Positions 8,293 through 63,691 of a stretch of 64,000 bases of DNA are shown here, in pieces. Source of the DNA: Macrostomum lignano (Eukaryota); assembly GCA_002269645.1 (NCBI GenBank), contig NIVC01001646.1, positions 62,001 through 126,000 of the forward strand. The letters are read 5' to 3'. Both the position numbers and the translations under genes were made by a program. The number at the start of each line of letters is the position of its first letter. Position 1 is the stretch's first letter. A model generated the notes under the pieces. That model was given only the letters and a program-made list of their open reading frames with translations. It ran no database searches and was not told the DNA's origin.

Positions 8293-10060
8293 ACAAGAAT
8301 CCAATTGAGAGCCAGCCAGACTGTACAAGAATTCAATTGAGAACCAGCCACATTGTACAAGAATCCAATTGAGAACCAGCTAGATTGTACAAGAATCCAA
8401 TTGAGAACCAGCTACATTGTACAAGAATCCAATTGAGAGCCAGCCAGACTGTACAAGAATCCAATTGAGAGCCAGCCAGACTGTACAAGAATCCAATTGA
8501 GAACCAGCTACATTGTACAAGAATCCAATTGAGAGCCAGCCAGACTGTACAAGAATTCAATTGAGAACCAGCCACATTGTACAAGAATCCAATTGAGAAC
8601 CAGCTAGATTGTACAAGAATCCAATTGAGAACCAGCTACATTGTACAAGAATCCAATTGAGAGCCAGCCAGACTGTACAAGAATCCAACTGAGAGCCAGC
8701 CAGACTGTACAAGAATCCAATTGAGAGCCAGCCAGACTGTACAAGAATCCAATTGAAAACCAGCCACACTGTACAAGATTCCAATTGAAAACCAGCCACA
8801 CTGCACAAGAATCCAATTGAAAACCAGCCACACTGTACAAGAATCCAATTGAGAACCAGCTAGATTGTACAAGAATCCAATTGAGAGCCAGCCAGACAGT
8901 ACAAGAATCCAATTGAGAGCCAGCCAGACTGTACAAGAATCCAATTGAGAGCCAGCCAGACTGTACAAGAATCCAATTGAGAACCAGCCAGACTGTACAA
9001 GAATCAAACTGAGAGCCAGCCAGACTGTACAAGAATCCAACTGAGAGCCAGCCAGACTGTACAAGAATCCAATTGAGAACCAGCTAGATTGTACAAGAAT
9101 CCAATTGAGAGCCAGCCAGACAGTACAAGAATCCAATTGAGAGCCAGCCAGACTGTACAAGAATCCAATTGAGAGCCAGCCAGACTGTACAAGAATCCAA
9201 CTGAGAGCCAGCCAGATTGTGCAAGAATCCAACTGAGAGCCAGCCAGATTGTACAAGAATCCAACTGAGAGCCAGCCAGACTGTACAAGAATCCAATTGA
9301 GAACCAGCTAGATTGTACAAGAATCCAACTGAGAGCCAGCCAGACTGTACAAGAATCCAACTGAGAGCCAGCCAGACTGTACAAGAATCCAACTGAGAGC
9401 CAGCCAGACTGTACAAGAATCCAATTGAGAACCAGCTAGATTGTACAAGAATCCAATTGAGAGCCAGCCAGACTGTACAAGAATCCATTTGAAAACCAGC
9501 CAGACTGTACAAGAATCTAACTAAGAGCCAGCCAGACTGTACAAGAATCCAATTGAGAACCAGCTAGATTGTACAAGAATCCAATTGAGAGCCAGCCAGA
9601 CAGTACAAGAATCCAATTGAGAGCCAGCCAGACTGTACAAGAATCCAATTGAGAACCAGCCAGACTGTACAAGAATCCAACTGAGAGCCAGCCAGACTGT
9701 ACAAGAATCCAATTGAGAACCAGCCACACTGCACAAGAATCCAATTGAAAACCAGCCACACTGTACAAGAATCTAACTAAGAGCCAGCCAGACTGTACAA
9801 GAATCCAATTGAGAACCAGCTAGATTGTACAAGAATCCAATTGAGAGCCAGCCAGACTGTACAAGAATCCAACTGAGAGCCAGCCAGACTGTACAAGAAT
9901 CCAATTGAGAACCAGCTAGATTGTACAAGAATCCAATTGAGAGCCAGCCAGACTGTACAAGAATCCATTTGAAAACCAGCCAGACTGTACAAGAATCCAT
10001 TTGAAAACCAGCCAGACTGTACAAGAATCTAACTAAGAGCCAGCCAGACAGTACAAGAAT
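8293..10060. repeat. 32-bp minisatellite (tgtacaagaatccaattgagagccagccagac)
   Basis: Direct reading; ORF offsets of 224 and 256 bp are multiples of 32. Confidence 0.95.
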
Positions 10061-37232: not shown

Positions 37233-38146
37233 CCCTGAAGAAAAAATATTGTTGTCACAACGGGCCACAAGGTGGGGTGGGGGGGCAAAGCATTAGCATG
37301 TCCACTCCATAGCTTTTACTGGGGGGGACGTGTCGGAGGTGACGCGCCTTGGTAAAAAATCAAAAACAAAGATAACTTGTAATCTGCGCCACCCCGTTCA
37401 CAATTTTCTGGGTCCACGCCTGTTCTCTGTGTAGTTTTTTATTTTTTGGTATAGGCATAAGCAGAACGGAGATGGTATAAAGGCTTGTGACAGTTCCCAT
37501 AACCGCTTTTAGCCTGTTTTGATATACCTTTGTACTCGTATGCTAGTTAGTGTACGCTATGGCCGCGTATGTACACTGTTCCCCCCGCTAGTCCCAGGTC
37601 CACGCGGGCTAAAAATAGACGCAGCGTACATACCGGGCTGAAAAATTGGCAAGGACGGCCCAAAATGAGGGGGAGGGGTTGCCGGCTGAACGGCAAGGGT
37701 TTTTCTAGACTAGAGGGAAGGCCGCACTCGGATTGGACAACAACTGCACAGCTAAACTGCACAGTTTATAAAACTGCCCTCCATTCGTTCCCGCATTCAT
37801 TCTTGCAAGTCGACTAGTTAGGTAGCTAGCTAGCTCTCCTTTTAGACTAAGCGATAGTAAGCTACTACTAGACGGCTTACGATAATTCACATGGCCAGCG
37901 TTAGGCTAAAACAATAAAGAAATGACCACTCTACTGTTACACGTCTCCAAGCAGAGGAGATCAACCAAGCAGCAGCAGTCGCAGCAGCAGAGCAAAGGAA
38001 ACAGACGACCATACAGTTCTACTACGCCAATTGGCCGAATACGACAACCGGGATTAGCGGCATTTGCGCACTACTTTGCTTTCTCTAGAGTAGCCCTAGG
38101 CAGGTACACGCCTGCTTTAGCCGCAGACTTGCCGTCGCAGACGACC

Positions 38147-51872: not shown

Positions 51873-52161
51873 TCAGACGGCATAATAGTGCGCCACCCAG
51901 AAAAGGATGTTCCCAAAGGTGTTGCGTGGGTGGCAGCGATGCCAGAGAAATTCGTCCAAGTGGGTGTCAAACAGGGCCTTGGATGTGCCATGCATGGCCC
52001 TGAAATGGGCCTTAGCGTGGGCCCATGTGCCCTCCACTGTGTTCGTGTGGACTTCTGGGTGGTTAGGGTCCACAAAGTGCAGCCAGTGGTTCACCGTCAA
52101 ATGATTGGGCAGTTGGTTGTATGCTTGCCACTGGTCGGTGATAATGCGAGTACCTGCTTTG
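51873..52161 (-). mobile_element. Merlin / ISXO2 (IS1595-like) DDE transposase, C-terminal fragment
   Basis: AGTRIITDQWQAYNQL..HLTVNH..FVDP..VHTNTVEGTWAHAK..GT..YLDEF-type motif (here HLDEFLWHR) is typical of ISXO2/Merlin transposases, with the second D and the E present. It is preceded by an acceptor-like ttattttcag. N-terminal half and TIRs not found. Confidence 0.85.
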
Positions 52162-53399
52162 CTGAAAATAATTAAAAATGCTTTAAAATAATAAAACATG
52201 CAAAACTAAAAGATTGCCAAAAGTCAATATGCCATGACATCTGTATATTATTCTTATTTCAAATGCAATGCCCAAAAATATAAATTGAATTGTGTTAGTT
52301 TTTTAAAAAAAGGATTAATACTATTTTACATTAAGCAAAAACAAACACTCACATGTTTTCTTTCTTTAGTAATATCAATTCATGTTCAGACCTATGCATT
52401 TGCTTCTCTCTCATTCAGGGCTATCTAACTTTGCTACCCATGGTTGCATCATATTGGCTTAATAGACTTAAAAATTCATCATCTTTCTGCATCTAGATAA
52501 TTGCCTGAAGATGCCAATTGTTTGGCAAAAGCAAAATATGTCATATAAAATAATATTAATATTAATATTATTTATATAAAGAAAGACAATATGCAAATGC
52601 TTGTTTTTGCTTTCATTCTCCTAACTTTCCTTAAACAACGTACCCTACTTCAATTTTATATAAACATTAAAATGTAACCTCTTTTGTGGACATTTGATCT
52701 ACTATAATAGCAATGGCTATCTAGTCAACCTTATAACATGCCATTTTATATCTTCTACCTACATGATACAACCATAAGCTAATAGATTTCTCTATATTTT
52801 ATACATCTTTGTTGCTATATACTTATTCTTTTTAAAATTCAAAAAGTCTAGTTCTAAAGTATTAGACATATATGTTAGTCTAGAAATATTACAATTTTTT
52901 AATTTTTCTAATTCAATCATATTTGTTTCAATTTATCACAAATATATACTTTAGACAATAGAACCATAATTTTTCTAAAATCAATTGTGACACACACTAA
53001 CAACTCAGTTTAGTATGTAAGATTTAAATTTATTAGTATTTTTAAAAAGTTACTTTAAAAAATAAGAAATAGTTTTTAATGTTTTTTTTTGCTAGTTTTG
53101 GTCTAAAATATTAATAATATACTAATATAAGATAATATGAAAATCATATAAAAGATTAAAAATTATACTAAACATACTATTTCTTTCTAATTTTATCATA
53201 GGTTTAGGGGTTAGCAAAATGGATAGCAATGCCTCCTTGCTGCATCTAGATAGTAGATACGTAAAACCCCTTATAGCTAAGTCAAATAAAGTTTATCATA
53301 GGTCATTAAAACTATTAAACAATCTAGACAATATAAACTATTAAACAATATGATACAGCTAAGAGCTGTCTTTTACCTATGCTATTTTATTATAGTCTA

Positions 53400-54460
53400 C
53401 TCTATATAGTCTACTCATTGCTGTCTCATTATAGGCTATACTCATTGTCATTACAGTCTGTACTCATTACAGTCTACTCATTACAGTCTGTACTAATTGA
53501 GTACTGTACTCATTGTTGTCTCATTGCAATCTGTGCTCAGTGCAGTCTGTACTCATTGCAGTCTGTGCTCATTGCAATCTGTGCTCAGTGCAGTCTGTAC
53601 TCATTGCAGTCTGTGCTCATTGCAGTCTGTGCTCATTGCAGTTTGTGACTGTGCTCATTGCAGTCTGTGCTCATTGCAGTCTGTGACTGTGCTCATTGCA
53701 GTCTGTACTCATTGCAGTCTGTACTCATTGCAGTCTGTACTCATTGCAGTCTGTACTCATCGCAGTCTGTGCTCATTGCAGTCTGTACTCATTGCAGTCT
53801 GTGCTCATTGCAGTCTGTACTCATTGAAGTCTGTACTCATTGCAGTCTGTACTCATTGCAGTCTGTGCTCATTGCTGTCTCATTGCAGTCTGTGCTCATT
53901 GCTGTCTCATTGCTGTCTCATTGCAGTCTGTTCTCATTGCAGTCTGAACTCATTGCTGTCTCATTGCAGTCTGTGCTCATTGCAGTCTGTGCTCATTGCT
54001 GTCTCATTGCAGTCTGTGCTCATTGCAGTCTGTGCTCATTGCAGTCTGTGCTCATTGCAGTCTGTACTCATTGCAGTCTGTGACTGTGCTCATTGCAGTC
54101 TGTGACTGTGCTCATTGCAGTCTGTACTCATTGCTGTCTCATTGCAGTCTGTGCTCATTGCAGTCTGTGCTCATTGAAGTCTGTACTCATTGCTGTCTCA
54201 TTGCAGTCTGTGCTCATTGCAGTCTGTGCTCATTGCAGTCTGTACTCATTGCTGTCTCATTGCAGTCTGTGCTCATTGCAGTCTGTGCTCATTGCAGTCT
54301 GTGCTCATTGCAGTCTGTGCTCATTGCAGTCTGTGCTCGTTGCAGTCTGTACTCATTGCTGTCTCATTGCAGTCTGTGCTCATTGCAGTCTGTGCTCATT
54401 GCAGTCTGTACTCATTGCAGTCTGTGACTGTGCTCATTGCTGTCTGTACTCTTTGCTGTC
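53400..54460. repeat. ~16-bp minisatellite (ctcattgcagtctgtg) abutting the centrin start
   Basis: Direct reading. Confidence 0.95.
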
Positions 54461-54466
54461 TCATGC

Positions 54467-55551
54467 ATGTCGACCTTCAAGAAGCCAAGCCCTGGCGGCG
54501 GCCAGAAGAAGAAGACGGCCGGCATCAAGCTGGAGCTGTCCGAGGAGCAGAAGCAGGAGATTCGCGAAGCATTTGACCTATTTAATAACGACGGCTCCGG
54601 CACCATCGACATCAAGGAACTGAAGGTGGCCATGCGGGCGCTCGGCTTCGAGCCCAAGAAAGAAGAGATTAAGAAGCTGATTGCCGAGTACGACAAGGAA
54701 GGCACAGGTGAGGGCTTCTTCGAGCTTTTATTAGGAGATTCATTCTGCAGTGGGGTGGGCAGGTTGACTGTAGGCCTCAGTCTAGTTGCAGACATGTGCT
54801 ACTTTTTTTAATCGTTTGGTAGACAGCCTGTCAATTAATACTGTGTTCCCCAGGTGTTCTCATGTGTTCCCCAGCTGTTCTTATGTGTTACCCAGCAGTT
54901 CATATGTGTTCCCCACTGTTCTTATGTGTCCCCCAGTGTTCTATGTGTTCCCCAGCTGTTCTTATGTGTTCCCTAGGTGTTCTTTTGTGTTCCCCAGGTG
55001 TTCTCATGTGTTCCCCAGGTGTTCTCATGTGTTCCCCAGGTGTTCTCATGTGTTCCCCAGGTGTTCTCATGTGTTCCCCAGGTGTTCTCATGTTCCCCAG
55101 GTGTTCTCATGTGTTCCCCAGGTGTTCTCATGTGTTCCCCAGGTGTTCTTATACAATTTTCCATGTGCTGGACGAGTACCTGATGATGTTCCATCTGTTC
55201 TATCTTCTTCTATGAGCTCTCACAATTAAATTTTCTACATTGTATTAATTAACGAAACCCGACTTCCTCCACGAAGGCACCATCGACTTTAACGACTTCC
55301 TAAGTATGATGACCAGCAAGATGACGGAGAAAGACTCGAAGGAGGAGATTCTCAAAGCCTTCCGCCTATTCGACGACGACGAGACTGGCAAGATTTCGTT
55401 TAAAAATTTGAAACGCGTTGCCAAGGAGCTGGGCGAGAATCTCACAGACGAGGAGCTTCAGGAGATGATCGACGAAGCCGACAGGGACGGCGACGGCGAG
55501 ATTAACGAGTCGGAATTTCTGCGGATTATGAAGAAGACCAGCCTGTATTGA
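54467..55551 (+). CDS. CETN2: Centrin (centrin-2/1 type, 4 EF-hands), 171 aa. Exons 54467-54707 and 55277-55551
   Basis: Joined protein has [49 protein letters not shown]|[67 protein letters not shown], close to human CETN2 as I recall it. Phase-1 intron: ACAG|gtgagg ... acgaag|GC. Confidence 0.95.
54845..55150. repeat. 21-bp minisatellite in the centrin intron (gttccccaggtgttctcatgt)
   Basis: Direct reading. Confidence 0.92.
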
Positions 55552-55734
55552 GCTGCTTTGTATACTTGGTATAATTTATATTGTAGTGCTTATCTGGCTT
55601 ATTCCTACGTTTTTATTGGACCATAGACCTACTCGACTTGTTGCTTTTGTTTTTTTTAAGATTCACTAAGCTTTTTAGTCACTGATAGGCTTTAGCTCTA
55701 AGCCAAAATCCTATTTTCACCGCACAGAACCCGG

Positions 55735-56080
55735 GAACCCCAATCTAGGACGGGGAATCCCAATATTAGGACGGGAATCCCAATCTTCGGACGGGGAATC
55801 CCAATATTAGGATGGGGAATCCCAATCTTAGGACGAGAAATCCCAATATTAGGATGGGGAATCCCAATCTTAGGACAGGCATCCCAATATTGGAACGGGG
55901 AATCACAATCTTAGGACGAGCATCCCAATATTAGAACGGGGAATCCCAATATTAGGACGGGGAATTCCAATGTTAGGACAGGGAATCCCAATCTTAGGAC
56001 GGGCATCCCCATATTAGAACGGGGAATCCCAATCTTGGTGCGGGGAATCCTAATTTTATCAAGGGGAATCACAACATTAG
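55735..56080. repeat. ~21-22-bp degenerate minisatellite (ggggaatcccaatattaggac)
   Basis: Direct reading. Confidence 0.85.
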
Positions 56081-56811
56081 AATGGAGTCTGAATATCCTA
56101 GGTTGAGTGTCCCAATCTTAGGTCAGTTAATCGCAACTATTAACTCACTAATAGTATTCAGATAAGAACAAAAAGTTGTATTATGGTTAGAGACATAAGC
56201 ATATTTATAATAATACACGTGAACGTGTCCTCTAAGACCATGTAATAGCTGAATTAGGAACCGTCTCGACCTATTGATTGACGGGCTTCTCGTGCTGGCT
56301 ATATTTTGCCCTAACTAAACTACTTATGCAACTGTTATAAGGATTATATTTGCAAATTTTCACTCAATCTTTGTGTCTATTATCCTTTAGATCTTAATTT
56401 TTCCGTATTGTGACTTCAGCGTTGACCTTTTATTAATTTCCTGCTGTTAAACATTGCAGTTTTGCGTGCTTGTCTTTGTGTTTCTTTTTAAAATCCAGTT
56501 TTACACTCTTTCTGTCAACATTCTGCTATTATAGAAATATATATAGTCTATATATTCACTGTTGTATAGGACTCTGAAATAAGGCTATTAAAAATCGATA
56601 TGGACTTTATTAATTGTAGCAAGTGATTTGTCTTCGTTTCTGTTTGCCACTATGAGTAGTGTTGTATGTTTGTTTGTTTTATTTTTGCTTAAAATTTAAA
56701 ACGTAAATTTAAAATCTGCAGAAAAAGTATGAAATCAACATTTTAATACATTTTTACGAAAATAAACATTCCTTTTTCTTTCTATATATCGTTGGTTGAA
56801 CCCACACGCCT

Positions 56812-57290
56812 CAACACCCCATCAGCTGCAGTCCTAACCCCTTTAAACACCCCATCAGCGGCAGCCCTAACCCCTTTAAACACCCCATCAGCTGCAGCCC
56901 TAACCCCTTTAAACACCCCATCAGCTGCACCTCTAACCCCTTTAAACACCCCATCAGCTGCAGCCCTAACCCCTTTAAACACCCCATCAGCTGCACCTCT
57001 AACCCCTTTAAACACCCCATCAGCTGCAGCCCTAACCCCTTTAAACACCCCATCAGCGGCAGCCCTAACCCCTTTAAACACCCCATCAGCTGCACCCCTA
57101 AGCCCTTTAAACACCCCATCAGCTGCAGCCCTAACCCCTTTAAACACCCCATCGGGTGCAGCCCTAACCCCTTTAAACACCCCATCAGCTGCAGCCCTAA
57201 CCCCTTTAAACACCCCATCAGCTGCACCCCTAAGCCCTTTAAACACCCCATCAGCTGCAGCCCTAACCCCTTTAAACACCCATCCGCTGC
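56812..57290. repeat. 33-bp minisatellite (accccatcagctgcagccctaacccctttaaac)
   Basis: Direct reading; gives an 11-aa ORF repeat. Confidence 0.95.
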
Positions 57291-57330
57291 ACTCTAACCC
57301 CACCGACCTGCCGCTAAAACCCGGTTGCAG

Positions 57331-59820
57331 TGGCTCCGCCTACGCAGAGTCCCCATGTTCGTGTACTGCCCGGCCGAGAACCGCTACCCGGGCTTTGCTG
57401 AATCACTGCTGGGCTGCGTGCGCCGGCTTGGCGCTCCGCCTGGAGCCCGAAGGCCCGGCCGCTCAGCTCAGGTGACCATCGACCTGCTGCCGGATCGCGT
57501 CTGCCTGTCGCCGCTTCGTGCTCGGACTTGCGAATCTATCGACGCTGGACTGCTTGACAGTTCGGCGACGTCAACGCATCACACAGAGCTGCACCGGCCT
57601 GCCGACTGCCCGGTGGCCAAGATTGCCGAAGGTGTCGGTTTGCAGCCTCCCGCTCAGGTGCGGCTGCAACCAGGGGTCTGGTGGCTAGGGGGAGTGTGAG
57701 TGGGAGGGTTAACAAGGGATGTTTAAGCCTCTTAGTTTAGCAGTGTGCTGTGTTTAAGCCTCTTAGGTAGTTTAGCAGTGTGCTGTGTTTAAGCCTATTG
57801 AGTTAGGGTAGTTTAGCAGTGTGGTGTGTTTAAGCCTATTGGGCTAGGGTGTTTAACAATGAGGATTTAAGCCTCTTAGGTAGTTTATTGGTGTCGTGTG
57901 TTTAAGCTCTCTAGGGCAGTTTAAAAATGGAGAGAGAGAGAGGGCTGTTTAAGTATGACACGGGGAGTTTAACAATTAAGCAAAAGGTGTTCATCAGATG
58001 CTTGGCGGAGTGATCACCACAGTCCACCCCTGCTGAATGCTCCCCCTTGCAGCCCGACGCTGCTGACACCCGCCGTCGTTTCACTCGCGTAGCGGCCGCA
58101 GCCGCTATACTGCTGGAATCTGGCGACGGTCGCCTGCTGCTCACCAGGCGCCCGGCCGGCATGTCCGCCTTCCCGGAGGTGTGGGTGCCGCCAGGCGGTC
58201 ATCTGGACCTCGGCGAGACCGCCGCACAGGCAGCGGCCAGAGAGCTGGCAGAGGAGGTCGGCCTGACCCTGCCTGCTGGCGGAGCCGGGCCGCCAATTCG
58301 CCTGCTCACGGCCTGGGAGTCCGTGTTCCCGGCCAGTCTGGACATTGGCTGGCCTGCTAGGCACCATCTGGTGCTGTACTTCCACGCCAGACTGTCGGAG
58401 TCTTCGGCTAGCCTGACCTCGGCCGCCAAGCCGGAGCCGCGCGAGGTGGACCGGCTGGTTTGGATTGACCGCCGGCTGGCCAGGCGGATCGGCGGCACTT
58501 TGCTGCTTGAAGAAGGCGACGGCCTAGCCGATGATGGCGATCGTCAGGTTAGCTGTGCTGCACTTCTGCGACTAGGGCTTGTCTGCTGAGACAGCGAGAG
58601 TGTAAATTAGTGAAGGTCATGCTGAAGAGTGACAGGACGTCATGAAGAGTGACAGAACGTCATGAAGAGTGACAGAACGTCATAAAGAGTGACAGAACGT
58701 CATGAAGAGTGACAGAACATCATGAAGAGTGACAGAACGGCATGAAGAGTGACAGAACGTCATGAAGAGTGACAGAACGTCATGAAGAGTGACAGAACGT
58801 CATTAATAGTGACAGACCGTCATTAATAGTGACAGACCGTCATGAAGAGTGACAGAACGTCATGAAGAGTGACAGAACGTCATTAATAGTGACAGACCGT
58901 CATTAATAGTGACAGACCGTCATGAAGAGTGACAGAACGTCATGAAGAGTGACAGAACGTCATTAATAGTGACAGACCGTCATTAATAGTGACAGACCAT
59001 CATTAATAGTGACAGACCGTCATTAATAGTGACAGAACGTCATGAAGAGTGACAGAGTCATAAAGAGTGACAGAAATTCATAAAGAGTGACAGAACGTCA
59101 TGAAGAGAGAACGTCATGAATAGTGACAGAACGTCATGAAGAGTGACAGAAAGTCATAAAGAGTCACAGAAAGTCATGAAGAGTGACAGAAAGTCACGAA
59201 GAGTGACCGAAAGTCATGAAGAGTGACAGAAAGTCATAAAAACAGTCATAAAGAGTGACAGAAAGTCATAAAGAGTGACAGAACGTCATGAAGAGTGACA
59301 GAGTCATAAAGAGTGACAGAAAGTCATGAAGAGTGACAGAAAGTCATAAAGAGTGACAGAAAGTCATAAAGAGTGACAGAACGTCATGAAGAGTGACAGA
59401 GTCATAAAGAGTGACAGAAAGTCATGAAGAGTGACAGAACGTCATGAAGAGAGAACGTCATAAAGAGTGACAGAAAGTCATAAAGAGTGACAGAAAGTCA
59501 TAAAGAGTGACAGAACGTCATGAATAGAGAACGTCATGAAGAGTGACAGAAAGTCACGAAGAGTCGGAGATCTGGAAGTGTGAGAGACAGTAATAGAGCA
59601 ACACACCAATAGCGCAATCCCCTCCAATTTTCAGAATAGCAGAGAAGAAACTCCAGATGAGGAAACGGTACCCAGCTGGTCTCTGGATAGGTCCGAGGTT
59701 CCGGTACAGGTTTCACAATTGCTCAGCTGCAGGCCTGACGCCAAGAACCGGGTTAGCACCGGGACCAAGATGGCCCTGCTGGAGTGGCTGCGGCTCACTG
59801 AGCAGGATGGGAACTGTTAG
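57331..59820 (+). CDS. NUDT17: NUDT17-like Nudix hydrolase. Exons 57331(acceptor; first ATG 57355)-57657, 58053-58547, 59635-59820
   Basis: Nudix box GGHLDLGETAAQAAARELAEEVGL. NUDT17-type motifs LLLTRR..VWVPPGGH, WESVFP..HHLVLY, LHRPADCP and C-terminal RVSTGTKMALLEWL. Both introns are phase 0 GT-AG (CAG|gtgcgg...ttgcag|CCC; CAG|gttagc...ttttcag|AAT). Stop TAG at 59818-59820. 5' end uncertain. Confidence 0.88.
58615..59562. repeat. 20-bp minisatellite in NUDT17 intron 2 (gtcatgaagagtgacagaac)
   Basis: Direct reading. Confidence 0.95.
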
Positions 59821-59849
59821 TTAGAGCTGGAAATTCAAAACGGTATGAG

Positions 59850-60265
59850 AAAACTGCAGCGATTCTCTGATTGGTTGGGGGAATCGAAAGAACTGCAGCG
59901 ATTCTCTGATTGGTTGGTAGAATAAGAAAACTGCAGCGATTCTCTGATTGGTTAGGAGGAAAGAGAGAACTGCAGCGATTCTCTGATTGGTTGGGAGAAT
60001 AGAGAGAACTGCAGCGATTCTCTGATTGGTTGGGAGAATAGAGAGAACTGCAGCGATTCTCTGATTGGTTGGGAGAATAGAGAGAACTGCAGCGATTCTC
60101 TGATTGGTTGGGAGAATAGAGAGAACTGCAGCGATTCTCTGATTGGTTGGGAGAATAGAGAGAACTGCAGCGATTCTCTGATTGGTTGGGAGAATAGAGA
60201 GAACTGCAGCGATTTTTTGATTGGTTGGGAGAATAGAGAGAACTGCAGCGATTTTTTGATTGGTT
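59850..60265. repeat. 39-bp minisatellite (agagaactgcagcgattctctgattggttgggagaatag)
   Basis: Direct reading; gives a 13-aa ORF repeat. Confidence 0.95.
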
Positions 60266-60446
60266 GATGGGAACTGCAATTTTCTTGTACGTTGGAAGGT
60301 GGTTGATTTTGCAAGTAAGTAATTTATAATTTCACAAATTAACTATTAATTAGCGTATAAGAACTACTGTCTCACTGCGTGTTTTAATGCTAATTTTATT
60401 TCTGGATATTTCATACATTTGTTTTGGCATTTACTCGTAAAGAAGC

Positions 60447-60917
60447 GCTTCCGGACATTTGCCCTCCGGCACTTCCCCTCCGGCACTTGCCCTCCGGCAC
60501 TTCCCCTCGGCGGCGTTTGCCCTCCGGACATTTGCCCTCCGGGACATTTCCCCTCCGGACATTTGCCCTCCGGACATTTCCCCTCGGGGACATTTGCCCT
60601 CGGGGACATTTGCCCTCCGGACATTTGCCCTCCGGACATTTGCCCTCCGGACATTTGCCCTCTGCAAATTTACCCCCTCGCACATTACTCACCTCACCTC
60701 CTCCTGTACCCACCCGTCGTTCCTCCAGCACCAACCTCATCCTCCCGCCTCTTGCATCCATCAGGTTCTTCTCCAGCCAACAACTCATCCTTTTCTAGTA
60801 AGCAATATATACCCGCGCCCTACCCTATCCCCAGCCTTACCTGTACTTTTCCAGAGGGGAAATGTCCGGAGGGCAAATGTCCGGAGGGCAAATGCCGGAG
60901 GGCAAATGTCCGGTAGC
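60447..60917. mobile_element. Non-autonomous foldback / Mutator-like MITE, 471 bp
   Basis: Termini gcttccggacatttgccctccggca and tgccggagggcaaatgtccggtagc are inverted with 1 mismatch in 25. Arms are built of 15-bp GGACATTTGCCCTCC repeats. Exact 11-bp direct repeat cgtaaagaagc at 60436-60446 and 60918-60928. Confidence 0.85.
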
Positions 60918-61074
60918 CGTAAAGAAGCCTAATTCAATGAAAACGAGATGATCACTAGAGTTTTTAATTCTAATCTGTTCAAATATAAACTATATTTATA
61001 ATATTTCTTTACCAATCAGTTACTCTGACTGGTCTTAACTTTTTAATATTGATGAACTGAGTTGATATATTAAT

Positions 61075-61540
61075 AAGTTAGCATTTGATACATTGATAAG
61101 TTGAGATTGATAAGTTGATATTTAGTAAATGTCTAGTTTGATAGATTGATTAGTTGATATTAAATTAATGTCTAGTTTGATAGATTGATTAGTTGATATT
61201 AAATTAATGTCTAGTTTGATAGATTGATTAGTTGATATTAAGTAAATGTCTAGTTTGATAGATTGATTAGTTGATATTTAGTAAATGTCTAGTTTGATAG
61301 ATTGATTAGTTGATATGAAATTAATGTCTAGTTTGATAGATTGATTAGTTGATATTTAGTAGATAGCTAGGTTGATAGATTGATAAGTTGATATTTAGTA
61401 GATAGCTAGGTTGATAGATTGATAAGTTGATATTTAGTAGATAGCTAGGTTGATAGATTGATAAGTTGATATTTAGTAGATAGCTAGGTTGATAGATTGA
61501 TAAGTTGATATTTAGTAGATAGCTAGGCTGATAGATTGAT
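61075..61540. repeat. 39-bp AT-rich minisatellite, two related unit types, upstream of the carrier exon
   Basis: gtctagtttgatagattgattagttgatattaaattaat, then agatagctaggttgatagattgataagttgatatttagt. Confidence 0.92.
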
Positions 61541-61569
61541 ACGGTGCTGCTATTATCGTGAACCCGCAG

Positions 61570-63691
61570 CAGCAGCAGCAGCCGGAAAGCGACTGGGTCC
61601 GGGTGGGCCTGGCCGGCTGCTCCAACCTGACGGCGGCGGTGGTCACCAATCCTGTAGACGTGGTGAAGATTCGCCTGCAGATCCAAGGCGAAGCAGCCAA
61701 CCGGACGAGCAGCGCTCGCTACGCCGGTTTCATTCGCGGCCTGGCCACCGTGGTCCGCAACGAAGGCCTTCGCGGTCTGTACAAAGGCGTCGTGCCGTCG
61801 ATGATGCGCGATGGCGGCTACGGGGCCATCCGGGTGGGCCTGTACGAGCCTGTCAAGCGGCTGTTCGGGGAGACCGATCCGGCTAACTTCTCGTTGTGGA
61901 AGAAAATCTGTTCGGGCGCTGTCACCGGCGTGCTGGGTAGCGCTGTGGCTACGCCTACGGATTTAGTGAAAGTTCGAATGCAGGCGTTCGAGTCCGGGGC
62001 CAGGTACCGCGGCACCTGGCACGCTTTTGTTAGTATCTATGCGGAGGGCGGCGTGCCTGCCCTGTACAAGGGCATCGGGCCGACTGTAGCCCGGGCCGCT
62101 GTTGTCACCGCTACTCAGGTCAGTCTGCTGCTTGGTTTGGGTTAGGCTGGGTCAGATTTAGGGTGTTTATGGGTCAGATTGGTGTGCTTATGGGTCAGAC
62201 TTAGTGTGTTTGTGGGACAGGTTTAGTGTGTTTATGGGACAGGTTTAGTGTGTTTATTATGGGACAGATTTAGTGTGTTTATGGGTCAGTTTTAGTGTTT
62301 ATGGGTCAGTTTTAGTGTTTATGGGTCAGTTTTAGTGTTTATGGGTCAGTTTTAGTGTTTATGGGACAGATTTAGTGTTTATGGGTCAGATTTAGTGTTT
62401 ATGGGTCAGTTTTAGTGTTTATGGGTCAGTTTTAGTGTTTATGGGACAGATTTAGTGTGTTTATGGGTCAGGTTTAGTGTGTTTATGGGTCAGTTTTAGT
62501 GTTTATGGGTCAGTTTTAGTGTTTATGGGACAGATTTAGTGTGTTTATGGGTTAGATTTAGTGTTTTTATGGGTCAGTTTTAGTGTTTATGGGTCAGATT
62601 TAGTGTTTATGGGTCAGTTTTAGTGTTTTTATGGGTCAGTTTTAGTGTTTATGGGTCAGGTTTAGTGTGTTTATGGGTCAGTTTTAGTGTTTATGGGTCA
62701 GTTTTAGTGTTTATGGGTCAGATTTAGTGTATTTATGGGTCAGTTTTAGTGTTTATGGGTCACATTTAGTGTTTATGGGTCAGATTTAGTGTTTATGGGT
62801 CAGTTTTAGTGTTTATGGGTCAGATTTAGTGTTTATGGGTCAGATTTAGTGTTTTTATGGGTCAGTTTTAGTGTTTATGGGTCAGATTTAGTGTTTATGG
62901 GACAGATTTAGTGTGTTTATGGGTCAGATTTAGTGTTTATGGGTCAGATTTAGTGTTTATGGGTCAGTTTTAGTGTATTTATGGGTCAGATTTAGTGTAT
63001 TTATGGGTCAGATTTAGTGTATTTATGGGTCAGATTTAGTGTATTTATGGGTCAGGTTTAGTGTATTTATGGGTCAGGTTTAGTGTGTTTTTTATGAGAC
63101 GGATTTAGTGTATTTATGGGTTAGGTTTAGTGTATTTATTATCAGTCACGTTATTTGTGTTTATAGGTCATTTTTGTGTTTATGGGTCAGATTTTGTGTT
63201 TATAGGTCAGCTTTTGTGTTAATGGGTCAGATTTTGTGTCTAAATCGGTCAGATAGTATGTTTTGTTCAGATTTGGTGTTTTTGAGGATGTCAGAGTCAG
63301 GTCAGCACTCCACATTAAGACACAAGATCCCTCATCATTGCAGGTGCCATCCTACGATCACTTTAAGCCCACCATGCTGAGCAGAGGCCTGCTCAAAGAG
63401 GGCCTGCCTTTGCACTTTCTAGCCAGCATGTTCGCCGGGCTGATGTGCGCCATCACAACCTCACCATTGGATGTAGTGAAGACCCGGGTGATGAACCAGG
63501 ACACGGTGGGCCTTCGTGGAGCCGCCTATTCCAATGCGTTCTCTTGCGCCGCTGCCGCCATCAGGACCGAAGGTCTGACCGGCCTCTATAAAGGATTCGT
63601 GCCGAACTGGATGCGGATCGGGCCGCACACTGTTATCACTTTTATGATTTTTGAGCAGCTTAGAAAACTGGTTGGCATTAGGCCGATTTAA
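61570..63691 (+). CDS. Mitochondrial carrier (SLC25), UCP-like / Dictyostelium ucpB-like. Exons ~61570-62118 and 63344-63691; no ATG in the first visible exon
   Basis: Three carrier signatures: PVDVVKIRLQ, PTDLVKVRMQ, PLDVVKTRVM. ATQ|VPSYDH joins across a phase-0 intron (CAG|gtcagt...ttgcag|GTG). C-terminus GLYKGFVPNWMRIGPHTVITFMIFEQLRKLVGIRPI resembles ucpB-type carriers. Confidence 0.9.
62145..63260. repeat. ~20-22-bp minisatellite in the carrier intron (atgggtcagttttagtgttt)
   Basis: Direct reading. Confidence 0.95.

Follow-up and report, generated by a model that had tools for sequence, protein, structure and literature searches.

This locus raises the question of where its protein-coding genes obtain their start codons. 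The window, by which we mean the whole 64-kb stretch of DNA that was analysed, was found by sequence comparison to be 100 % identical to Macrostomum lignano scaffold NIVC01001646.1 of assembly Mlig_3_7, with window position x corresponding to scaffold position x + 62000. Between 54.4 and 63.7 kb it carries GC-rich exons set among AT-rich sequence and minisatellites, and these exons make up three plus-strand genes, for a centrin, NUDT17 and a ucpB-like mitochondrial carrier, as described in an earlier note on this DNA made from the sequence alone. That note had proposed that the genes form a polycistron in which at least the carrier takes its start codon from a trans-spliced leader, a proposal that would fall if the host were not a flatworm. 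The host is M. lignano, a flatworm with a spliced leader (SL) that ends in AUG, and the 298-aa carrier translation beginning QQQQPESDW was by exact look-up identical to the M. lignano UniRef entry A0A1I8IGB9.

M. lignano has a single 35-nt SL, CGGTCTCTTACTGCGAAGACTCAATTTATTGCATG, with the tail ...TTATTGCATG ending in ATG; trans-splicing affects about 30 % of its genes, and 15 % are in operons (PMC8629364). The final ATG of the Macrostomum SL has been noted as a likely start codon (PMC10468722). Trans-splice acceptors follow the motif [T/C]TNCAG, which was found at 9551 of 21754 sites, and operon spacers are inflated by repeats, the repeat-adjusted lengths having their mode at ~100 bp and 1 kb serving as the working threshold (PMC8629364). 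A search of the window with the last 16 nt of the SL, allowing ≤3 mismatches, found no SL RNA gene.

It is probable that centrin, NUDT17, the carrier and a DUSP11-like gene constitute a four-gene SL trans-spliced operon with SL-AUG starts. A long precursor RNA would cover all four genes and would be cut into single mRNAs by upstream 3′-end formation and by trans-splicing of the SL to an AG acceptor at each first coding exon. As the SL ends in AUG and the acceptors are phase 0, the SL would supply the start codon. Cis-splicing of the same acceptors to cryptic donors close to the 3′ end of the preceding ORF would give chimeric read-through mRNAs that appear as fused proteins in the databases, and minisatellites would have inflated the intergenic spacers. 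The three genes of the original description therefore stood, with the unit extending to a fourth past the window end. We infer trans-splicing at individual sites, co-transcription and SL-AUG translation from the gene structures, the starts and partial status of the public gene models, the chimeric models and the differences between paralogous copies of the locus. The copies compared were that of the window (L001, which runs past the window end), L002, L003 and L005, the contig of the last stopping before centrin.

The carrier, with three Mito_carr repeats in Pfam, has as its best relatives in homologue searches the ucpB-like carriers of molluscs and brachiopods (56–58 % identity). Its first exon follows the phase-0 acceptor reported earlier, ccgcag/CAG CAG CAG CAG CCG, with the AG ending at 61569 (acceptor coordinates in the earlier note refer to the last intron base, that is the last base of the AG). 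Use of any of the five CAGs as acceptor would give M(Q)nPESDW. Upstream of 61570 the frame is closed by a TGA at 61537 with no intervening ATG, and the claim that no ATG precedes the first transmembrane helix was borne out: all frames are free of ATG from 61500 to 61800, and in the coding frame ATG first appears as codon 78, at 61801. Initiation at codon 78 would cost the protein its first transmembrane helix together with the first carrier motif. Among 120 homologues the initiator Met mostly lies 26–27 residues before the first PxDxxKxR motif, and an SL Met would place it at 28; a Saccoglossus protein, MASSQPESEAVRYALAG, is closely comparable to the SL-started carrier, MQQQQPESDWVRVGLAG. Since the SL Met gives an N-terminus of family-typical length, no missing coding exon is required. 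A separate carrier gene, BOX15_Mlig015835g1 (PAA46957.1, PAA65478.1), is annotated in L003 and L005 and modelled as a partial 297-aa protein starting QQQPESDW. The absence of an alternative ATG and the 5′-partial public models support the proposal that the carrier takes its start codon from the SL, and it is likely that translation begins at the SL AUG as the sole available initiator, giving MQQQQPESDW or MQQQPESDW.

Comparison of the copies at the acceptors revealed bases that deviate towards the SL itself. Every deviation swaps base −2, bases −2 to −4 or bases −2 to −5 for those of the SL tail (...GCATG), in a nested series. The deviating bases lie at window positions 54465–54469 and 57327–57329, at L002 9997–10000, at L003 9996–10000, 13281 and 19335, and at L005 1660. 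Over 5747 non-repeat columns the window and L002 are separated by only 11 substitutions, of which three, in a row, turn GCA into CAT at −4 to −2 of the NUDT17 acceptor; chance is not a credible explanation of the SL-like bases. Mlig_3_7 was polished by Pilon with Illumina DNA and STAR-mapped RNA-seq reads, end-to-end mapping being specified for the transcriptome step (PMC5730564). Nested mismatches are expected from end-to-end reads that start a few bases inside the SL, at sites where RNA coverage outweighs DNA. We accordingly read these bases as probable accidental footprints of SL-carrying RNA-seq reads, which would make them indirect RNA-level evidence for trans-splicing at the centrin, NUDT17 and DUSP11 acceptors. 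Trans-splicing at centrin and NUDT17 is very likely. No earlier account of such a polishing artefact was found in the literature searched.

For centrin the footprint bears directly on the start codon. Its product has four EF-hands in Pfam and is 171 aa long including the Met, with a match to human centrin-2 at E = 4e-81; residues 2–171 align to residues 3–172 of the human protein, leaving the start MSTFKK one residue off the human MASNFKK. The public models PAA65479.1 and A0A1I8II50 are both 5′-partial and begin at STFKK, the codon after a printed ATG. The earlier description needs correction at this point, in that the assembly does print an ATG for centrin at 54467, though probably as an artefact. 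From its periodicity, the upstream array predicts ...CATTGCAG/TC before centrin, where the last repeat reads CATGCATG/TC and L003 reads CATTCATG/TC. The true sequence is probably a perfect TTGCAG acceptor, with the ATG at 54467 not in the genome. Centrin lacks a genomic AUG only if that ATG is a polishing artefact. The next in-frame Met (MRALGF..., at about residue 56) is unusable as a start because it lies within the first EF-hand pair (Pfam EF-hand_7, 30–93). The centrin start codon is thus probably supplied by the SL, as the printed ATG is likely not genomic. GenBank also lists a 166-aa centrin product (L001 7141–8221 and L002 7142–8222) beginning one base into the first post-ATG codon; it was not reproduced by any simple gene model, the expected length being 169–171 aa.

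NUDT17 carries a NUDIX domain in Pfam, and its relatives outside Macrostomum bear the same name in homologue searches. The phase-0 acceptor noted previously, ggttgcag/TGG CTC CGC with the AG ending at 57330, is present and in frame with the ORF. The models PAA65489.1 (this scaffold) and PAA86916.1 (L002) both begin WLRLRRVPMFVY at 57331 and are flagged partial; the UniProt model A0A1I8IHL8 starts at the same place and stands alone with a natural stop. The gene does not lack a genomic AUG, having its own in-frame ATG at 57355, eight codons downstream of the acceptor. The SL-AUG product would be MWLRLRRVP-MFVY..., in which RRVPMFVYC aligns loosely with the mollusc and mammalian NUDT17 N-termini GRILAFLQW and ARVLLLLCR. 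Either the SL AUG or the gene's own ATG could initiate, and the SL AUG is possibly optional here. At a second acceptor (57347/57348, cgcag/AGTCCCC) the SL AUG is placed out of frame and would open an 18-codon overlapping ORF. L003 (~14245) and L005 have in common a 50-nt frameshifting deletion in NUDT17 exon 2, equivalent to window 58259–58308, and the UniProt model P0128 shows a garbled middle at this deletion. In one subgenome NUDT17 may be degenerating, with centrin and the carrier still intact.

The fourth gene is co-oriented and lies at L001 17332–21240, starting ~660 nt past the window end. It encodes a DUSP11/PIR1-type RNA 5′-phosphatase, with DUSP11 structures matched at E = 2e-46. Its acceptor, TTTCAG, lies ~970 nt past the carrier stop and is followed 7 nt on by a second (L001 17332 and 17339). 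From the first the SL AUG is out of frame and heads an 18-codon overlapping upstream ORF; from the second it is in frame and gives MRCTMPGG. Each downstream gene thus has tandem acceptors, between which the frame of the SL AUG varies for NUDT17 (57331/57348) and DUSP11 and the length of the poly-Q varies for the carrier (61570–61581). The choice of acceptor could in principle decide whether initiation is productive or opens a short overlapping upstream ORF. The unit includes two enzymes that act on RNA 5′ ends, NUDT17 (an m7GpppN-mRNA hydrolase) and DUSP11.

Across the four genes, the SL AUG is in frame with the conserved ORF for centrin, for NUDT17 at its first acceptor, for the carrier at all CAGs and for DUSP11 at its second acceptor. 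The published acceptor motif is matched in full by NUDT17 (TTGCAG) and DUSP11 (TTTCAG) and in part by the carrier (CCGCAG); for centrin, where the assembly reads GCATG, TTGCAG is deduced from the array. An in-frame acceptor alone is a one-in-three event, and the informative points are the lack of an alternative ATG and the public gene models rather than the frame by itself. A further in-frame site had been pointed out at PPP1R3, gtcgcag/ACG ACC ATG ending at 38140; it is present and in frame, and adds no evidence, since that ORF extends upstream without interruption to an ATG at 37922.

The public models also bear on whether the genes share a transcript. The GenBank annotation was produced by the TBONE pipeline, which splits assembled transcripts where SL-trimmed reads peak and where poly(A) sites occur (PMC5730564). 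All annotated 5′ ends of centrin, NUDT17 and the carrier coincide with acceptor-type boundaries and none has a start codon; the UniProt models A0A1I8IGB9 (beginning after the first carrier CAG), A0A1I8II50 and A0A1I8IHL8 start at the same boundaries as the GenBank models. Three further models are chimeric, joining centrin to NUDT17, NUDT17 to the carrier and the carrier to DUSP11. All three cross-gene splices are canonical GT-AG and land on the 5′ acceptor of the downstream gene, and as such splices need both genes on one RNA, the genes would share one. The locus tags Mlig010689g2 and Mlig027230g2 carry the suffix g2, which marks the second gene of a transcription unit, and no opposite-strand gene lies between the co-oriented neighbours among the called genes of L001, L002 and L003. 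No mention of Mlig018194, Mlig010689, Mlig027230 or Mlig015835 was found in the text or supplements of the relevant papers.

Measured from stop codon to acceptor, a measure that exceeds the real intergenic distance, the first two spacers are ~1.75 kb each; with tandem arrays subtracted they are 942 nt (centrin–NUDT17) and 614 nt (NUDT17–carrier, or 409 nt without a young insertion described below). The carrier–DUSP11 spacer is 970 nt unadjusted. All are below 1000 bp after adjustment for repeats, the operon distance used in PMC8629364. Only one AATAAA occurs in the centrin–NUDT17 spacer; it is a candidate poly(A) signal for centrin and lies ~545 nt from the NUDT17 acceptor, with minisatellite making up 489 nt of that distance. 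Together with the chimeric models and the g2 tags, the adjusted spacers lend support to the polycistron proposed earlier, and the four genes appear to be co-transcribed as one precursor RNA.

Several observations weigh against this interpretation. With their repeats counted, spacers of ~1.75 kb are long for an operon, and the UniProt chimeric models may partly reflect gene prediction and not transcripts alone. The TG at the NUDT17 acceptor of L003 and L005 could be a real shared mutation, the same two copies also sharing the frameshifting deletion. For the carrier, the acceptor matches the published motif only in part and has no SL footprint, reading AG throughout the four copies; in L001 and L002 GenBank annotates it only as a NUDT17 fusion and not separately; and an ATG mini-exon with a consensus donor exists upstream. 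Exact look-ups of MQQQQPE..., MQQQPE..., VSYCEDSIYCMQQQQ..., MSTFKK..., MKPSPGG... and MWLRLRR... found all of them absent from the protein collection. Homologue searches with the carrier and NUDT17 returned no transcript-derived Macrostomum sequences.

The mini-exon offers the carrier a genomic start codon, in which case cis-splicing to 61570 would make the SL AUG unnecessary. No other ATG-initiated ORF of the 1.75-kb spacer runs into a consensus donor (here CAA/GTAAGT) in phase 0, and the mini-exon ORF stays open in L003 and L005, with an F to V and two synonymous changes. However, it occurs in no public model, its first half is a degenerate copy of the adjoining minisatellite unit, and its donor is weakened to GTAAAA in L003 and L005, precisely where the carrier is a stand-alone 5′-partial gene. 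Between the copy groups it diverges ~10 times faster than the carrier coding sequence (4 substitutions in 48 nt versus 7 in 897 nt, with six of the seven synonymous), and it would add a hydrophobic 16 residues, so that 44 would precede the first carrier motif, where the family mode is 26–28. A start in this exon is therefore improbable. The carrier might instead be made mainly as the annotated 611-aa fusion, translated from the NUDT17 start codon; this form is in frame, uses a GT-AG splice from 59751/59752 to 61570 and is what GenBank lists as PAA65489.1 and PAA86916.1. Its donor, GTTAGC, is weak, and the fusion drops the conserved NUDT17 C-terminus (VSTGTK.AL..W) that is kept in mollusc and mammalian homologues. 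The carrier is annotated by itself in other copies, A0A1I8IHL8 is NUDT17 by itself with the natural stop, and the similar chimeras at both adjacent junctions are more readily understood as by-products of splicing in a polycistron than as a designed fusion. The annotation pipeline retained only distinct coding sequences and may have favoured the chimeric form, and we consider the fusion as the main product very improbable.

At the level of the whole unit, each gene could be trans-spliced individually from its own promoter, in which case there would be no operon and the chimeras would reflect infrequent read-through or errors of annotation. Most trans-spliced genes of M. lignano, about 60 %, do lie outside operons (PMC8629364), the spacers are ~1.75 kb before repeats are discounted, and a 39-nt array upstream of the carrier bears CCAAT-box-like motifs. 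Set against this are three independent cross-gene splices that each land on a downstream 5′ acceptor, the g2 suffix of the locus tags and repeat-adjusted spacers within the published operon distance, which together leave separate promoters unlikely. The SL-like bases (GCATG, CATG and TG) could for their part be real genomic sequence, left by trans-spliced mRNA that had been reverse-transcribed and used in gene conversion. At several sites and in several copies the altered bases are exactly those of the SL tail, and one gene with SL sequence at its genomic 5′ end is known (PMC8629364). If true, gene conversion would give SL-dependent genes a genomic ATG and destroy the acceptor, amounting to an escape from trans-splicing in progress between recent duplicates. 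Polishing with RNA-seq reads explains the pattern without new biology, however; tracts of just 1–4 nt nested from −2 outward fit read overhangs and not cDNA conversion, and the public models, all the same, start 3′ of these bases and are marked partial. Conversion is thus a highly unlikely origin for the bases, and a trans-spliced operon with polishing footprints in its assembly is the reading retained here.

Table 1. Features of the locus in window coordinates. A slash marks an exon–intron boundary; TRF, Tandem Repeats Finder; L001 is the copy in the window and L002, L003 and L005 are its paralogous copies.
Feature	Position	Strand	Details
Minisatellite upstream of centrin	53448..54461	+	~60 copies, unit TCATTGCAGTCTGTGC; TTGCAG in every unit; abuts centrin exon; TRF
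GCATG	54465..54469	+	Equals last 5 nt of SL; includes apparent centrin ATG 54467-54469; likely replaced TGCAG acceptor
Centrin site			L001, L002 ctcatGCATG/TCG; L003 ctcattCATG/TCG; predicted ctcatTGCAG/TC
Centrin exon 1	54470..54707 (54467 with printed ATG)	+	Added SL AUG would give MSTFKK...
Centrin exon 2	55277..55551	+	Stop TGA 55549-55551
Cross-gene intron, centrin–NUDT17	55545..57347	+	CT/GTATTGA (55544/55545) at centrin stop to cgcag/A (57347/57348); A0A1I8HSG1, 498 aa, KKTSL/VPMFVY
AATAAA	56761..56766	+	Sole one between centrin and NUDT17; candidate centrin poly(A) signal
Minisatellite, centrin–NUDT17 spacer	56813..57301	+	33-nt unit, 14.9 copies; TRF
NUDT17 acceptor TTGCAG	57325..57330	+	Perfect [T/C]TNCAG match; TTCATG in L002, TTGCTG in L003 and L005
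NUDT17 site			L001 ggttGCAG/TGG; L002 ggttCATG/TGG; L003, L005 ggttGCTG/TGG
NUDT17 exon 1	57331..57657	+	Public models open at 57331 (WLRLRRVPMFVY...)
NUDT17 exon 2	58053..58547	+	Nudix domain
NUDT17 exon 3	59635..59820	+	Stop TAG 59818-59820; internal cryptic donor CGG/GTTAGC at 59751/59752
Cross-gene intron, NUDT17–carrier	59752..61569	+	CGG/GTTAGC to 61570; PAA65489.1/PAA86916.1, 611 aa, DAKNR/QQQQPE
Minisatellite, NUDT17–carrier spacer	59847..60266	+	39-nt unit, 10.8 copies, begins 27 nt past NUDT17 stop; TRF
Candidate alternative first exon of carrier (mini-exon)	60267..60314	+	ATG and 15 codons (MGTAIFLYVGRWLILQ), then GTAAGT; phase 0 with 61570
Insertion	60447..60917		471 bp; 11-bp target-site duplication CGTAAAGAAGC at 60436-60446 and 60918-60928
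Minisatellite before carrier	61104..61541	+	39-nt unit, 11.2 copies, ends 28 nt 5′ of acceptor; TRF
Five-CAG run	61567..61581	+	Tandem phase-0 acceptors; models begin after first CAG (61570, 298 aa) or second (61573, 297 aa)
Carrier site			AG in L001, L002, L003, L005
Carrier exon 1	61570..62118	+	QQQQPESDW...; no ATG before codon 78
Carrier exon 2	63344..63691	+	Stop TAA 63689-63691; cryptic donor CTG/GTTGGC at 63670/63671
Cross-gene splice, carrier–DUSP11	63670/63671 (donor)	+	CTG/GTTGGC to tgttcag/CGC; A0A1I8IGS2, 644 aa, LRKL/RCTMPGG
AATAAA	63696..63701	+	5 nt past carrier stop codon
DUSP11 site			L001, L002, L005 ctttcAG; L003 ctttcTG

Tandem repeats make up 48 % of the 64-kb window, in 42 arrays with units mostly of 15–60 nt (TRF). 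The arrays fill nearly all introns and spacers and usually end 30–130 nt before the next acceptor. The description of each coding start as lying directly behind a minisatellite was accurate for the three genes of the window, the arrays ending 8, 29 and 28 nt before the starts of centrin, NUDT17 and the carrier; the DUSP11-like gene has no preceding minisatellite. This adjacency exceeds chance, as only ~2 % of window positions fall ≤30 nt 3′ of an array end. In the array upstream of centrin the motif TTGCTGTCTCAT-TGCA-GTC occurs eight times. The actual centrin acceptor appears to be the last unit of this array, which resembles a tandem amplification of the acceptor segment. Each unit of the array that follows the NUDT17 stop contains CTGATTGGTTGG, in ~11 tandem copies, a sequence that resembles a CCAAT/Y-box motif on the opposite strand.

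The 471-bp insertion in the NUDT17–carrier spacer has inverted termini (GCTTCCGGACATTTGCCC... and ...GGGCAAATGTCCGGTAGC) built from 15-mer arrays, and looks foldback-like or like a miniature inverted-repeat transposable element (MITE). It is present in L001 and L002, with an empty site in L003 and L005. A cis-spliced ATG exon at ~60.7–60.8 kb, named in the earlier note as a possible upstream carrier exon that would count against an SL start, falls inside the insertion and was rejected, the two copies without the insertion having the carrier annotated as stand-alone. Elsewhere in the window, an isolated 108-aa ORF (51873–52199, minus strand) lies in a segment that is not shared with L003. We take this ORF to resemble the C-terminal part of an ISXO2/IS1595-type transposase (...TDQWQAYN...VNH...FV...HTNTVEGTW...).

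If the interpretation holds, the SL would supply both cap and start codon for at least one, and probably two, of the proteins of a four-gene operon, the one being essential-looking. The 5′-partial entries A0A1I8IGB9, PAA46957.1 and PAA65479.1 are then probably complete once the SL Met is added, and the 498-, 611- and 644-aa fusion entries are probably by-products of failed trans-splicing. Mlig_3_7 appears to hold SL-derived bases at trans-splice sites, erasing AG acceptors and creating false ATGs, and this may be genome-wide. Were the artefact widespread, motif and start-codon analyses made on Mlig_3_7 would be biased, for example the motif count of PMC8629364.

The locus resembles the operons of Caenorhabditis elegans in that a polycistron would be resolved by polyadenylation and SL trans-splicing. 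C. elegans operons have spacers of ~100 nt, an SL2-type specialization and an SL that does not end in AUG. In contrast, M. lignano has a single SL without an SL2-type, and its spacers here reach ~1.75 kb because of minisatellites. Known M. lignano operons (Wudarski et al. 2017, PMC5730564; Ustyantsev and Berezikov 2021, PMC8629364), described from the same assembly, share the co-orientation, the repeat-inflated spacers that adjust to <1 kb and the [T/C]TNCAG acceptors; those two papers do not treat these genes, SL-AUG initiation or SL bases in the assembly. As in parasitic flatworms (PMC12582326), one acceptor would serve both SL trans-splicing and cis-splicing, whereas here the donor used in cis belongs to another gene on the same precursor, with chimeric ORFs as the result. 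Among the trans-spliced mRNAs of Schistosoma mansoni, 28 % have the SL AUG in frame, and >40 cDNAs are reported to depend on it (Cheng et al. 2006, J Biol Chem 281:733, as cited in PMC9851317 and PMC12582326). As far as the citing papers describe them, those mRNAs have the same arrangement of an SL ending in AUG, a phase-0 acceptor at the second codon and a recipient ORF without AUG. They differ in coming from a parasite in which translation was tested, whereas M. lignano is a free-living macrostomid and the case made here comes from gene models and sequence alone. Initiation from an SL AUG is already known in flatworms as a mechanism, and the locus is a clear worked case of it, ordinary for M. 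lignano.

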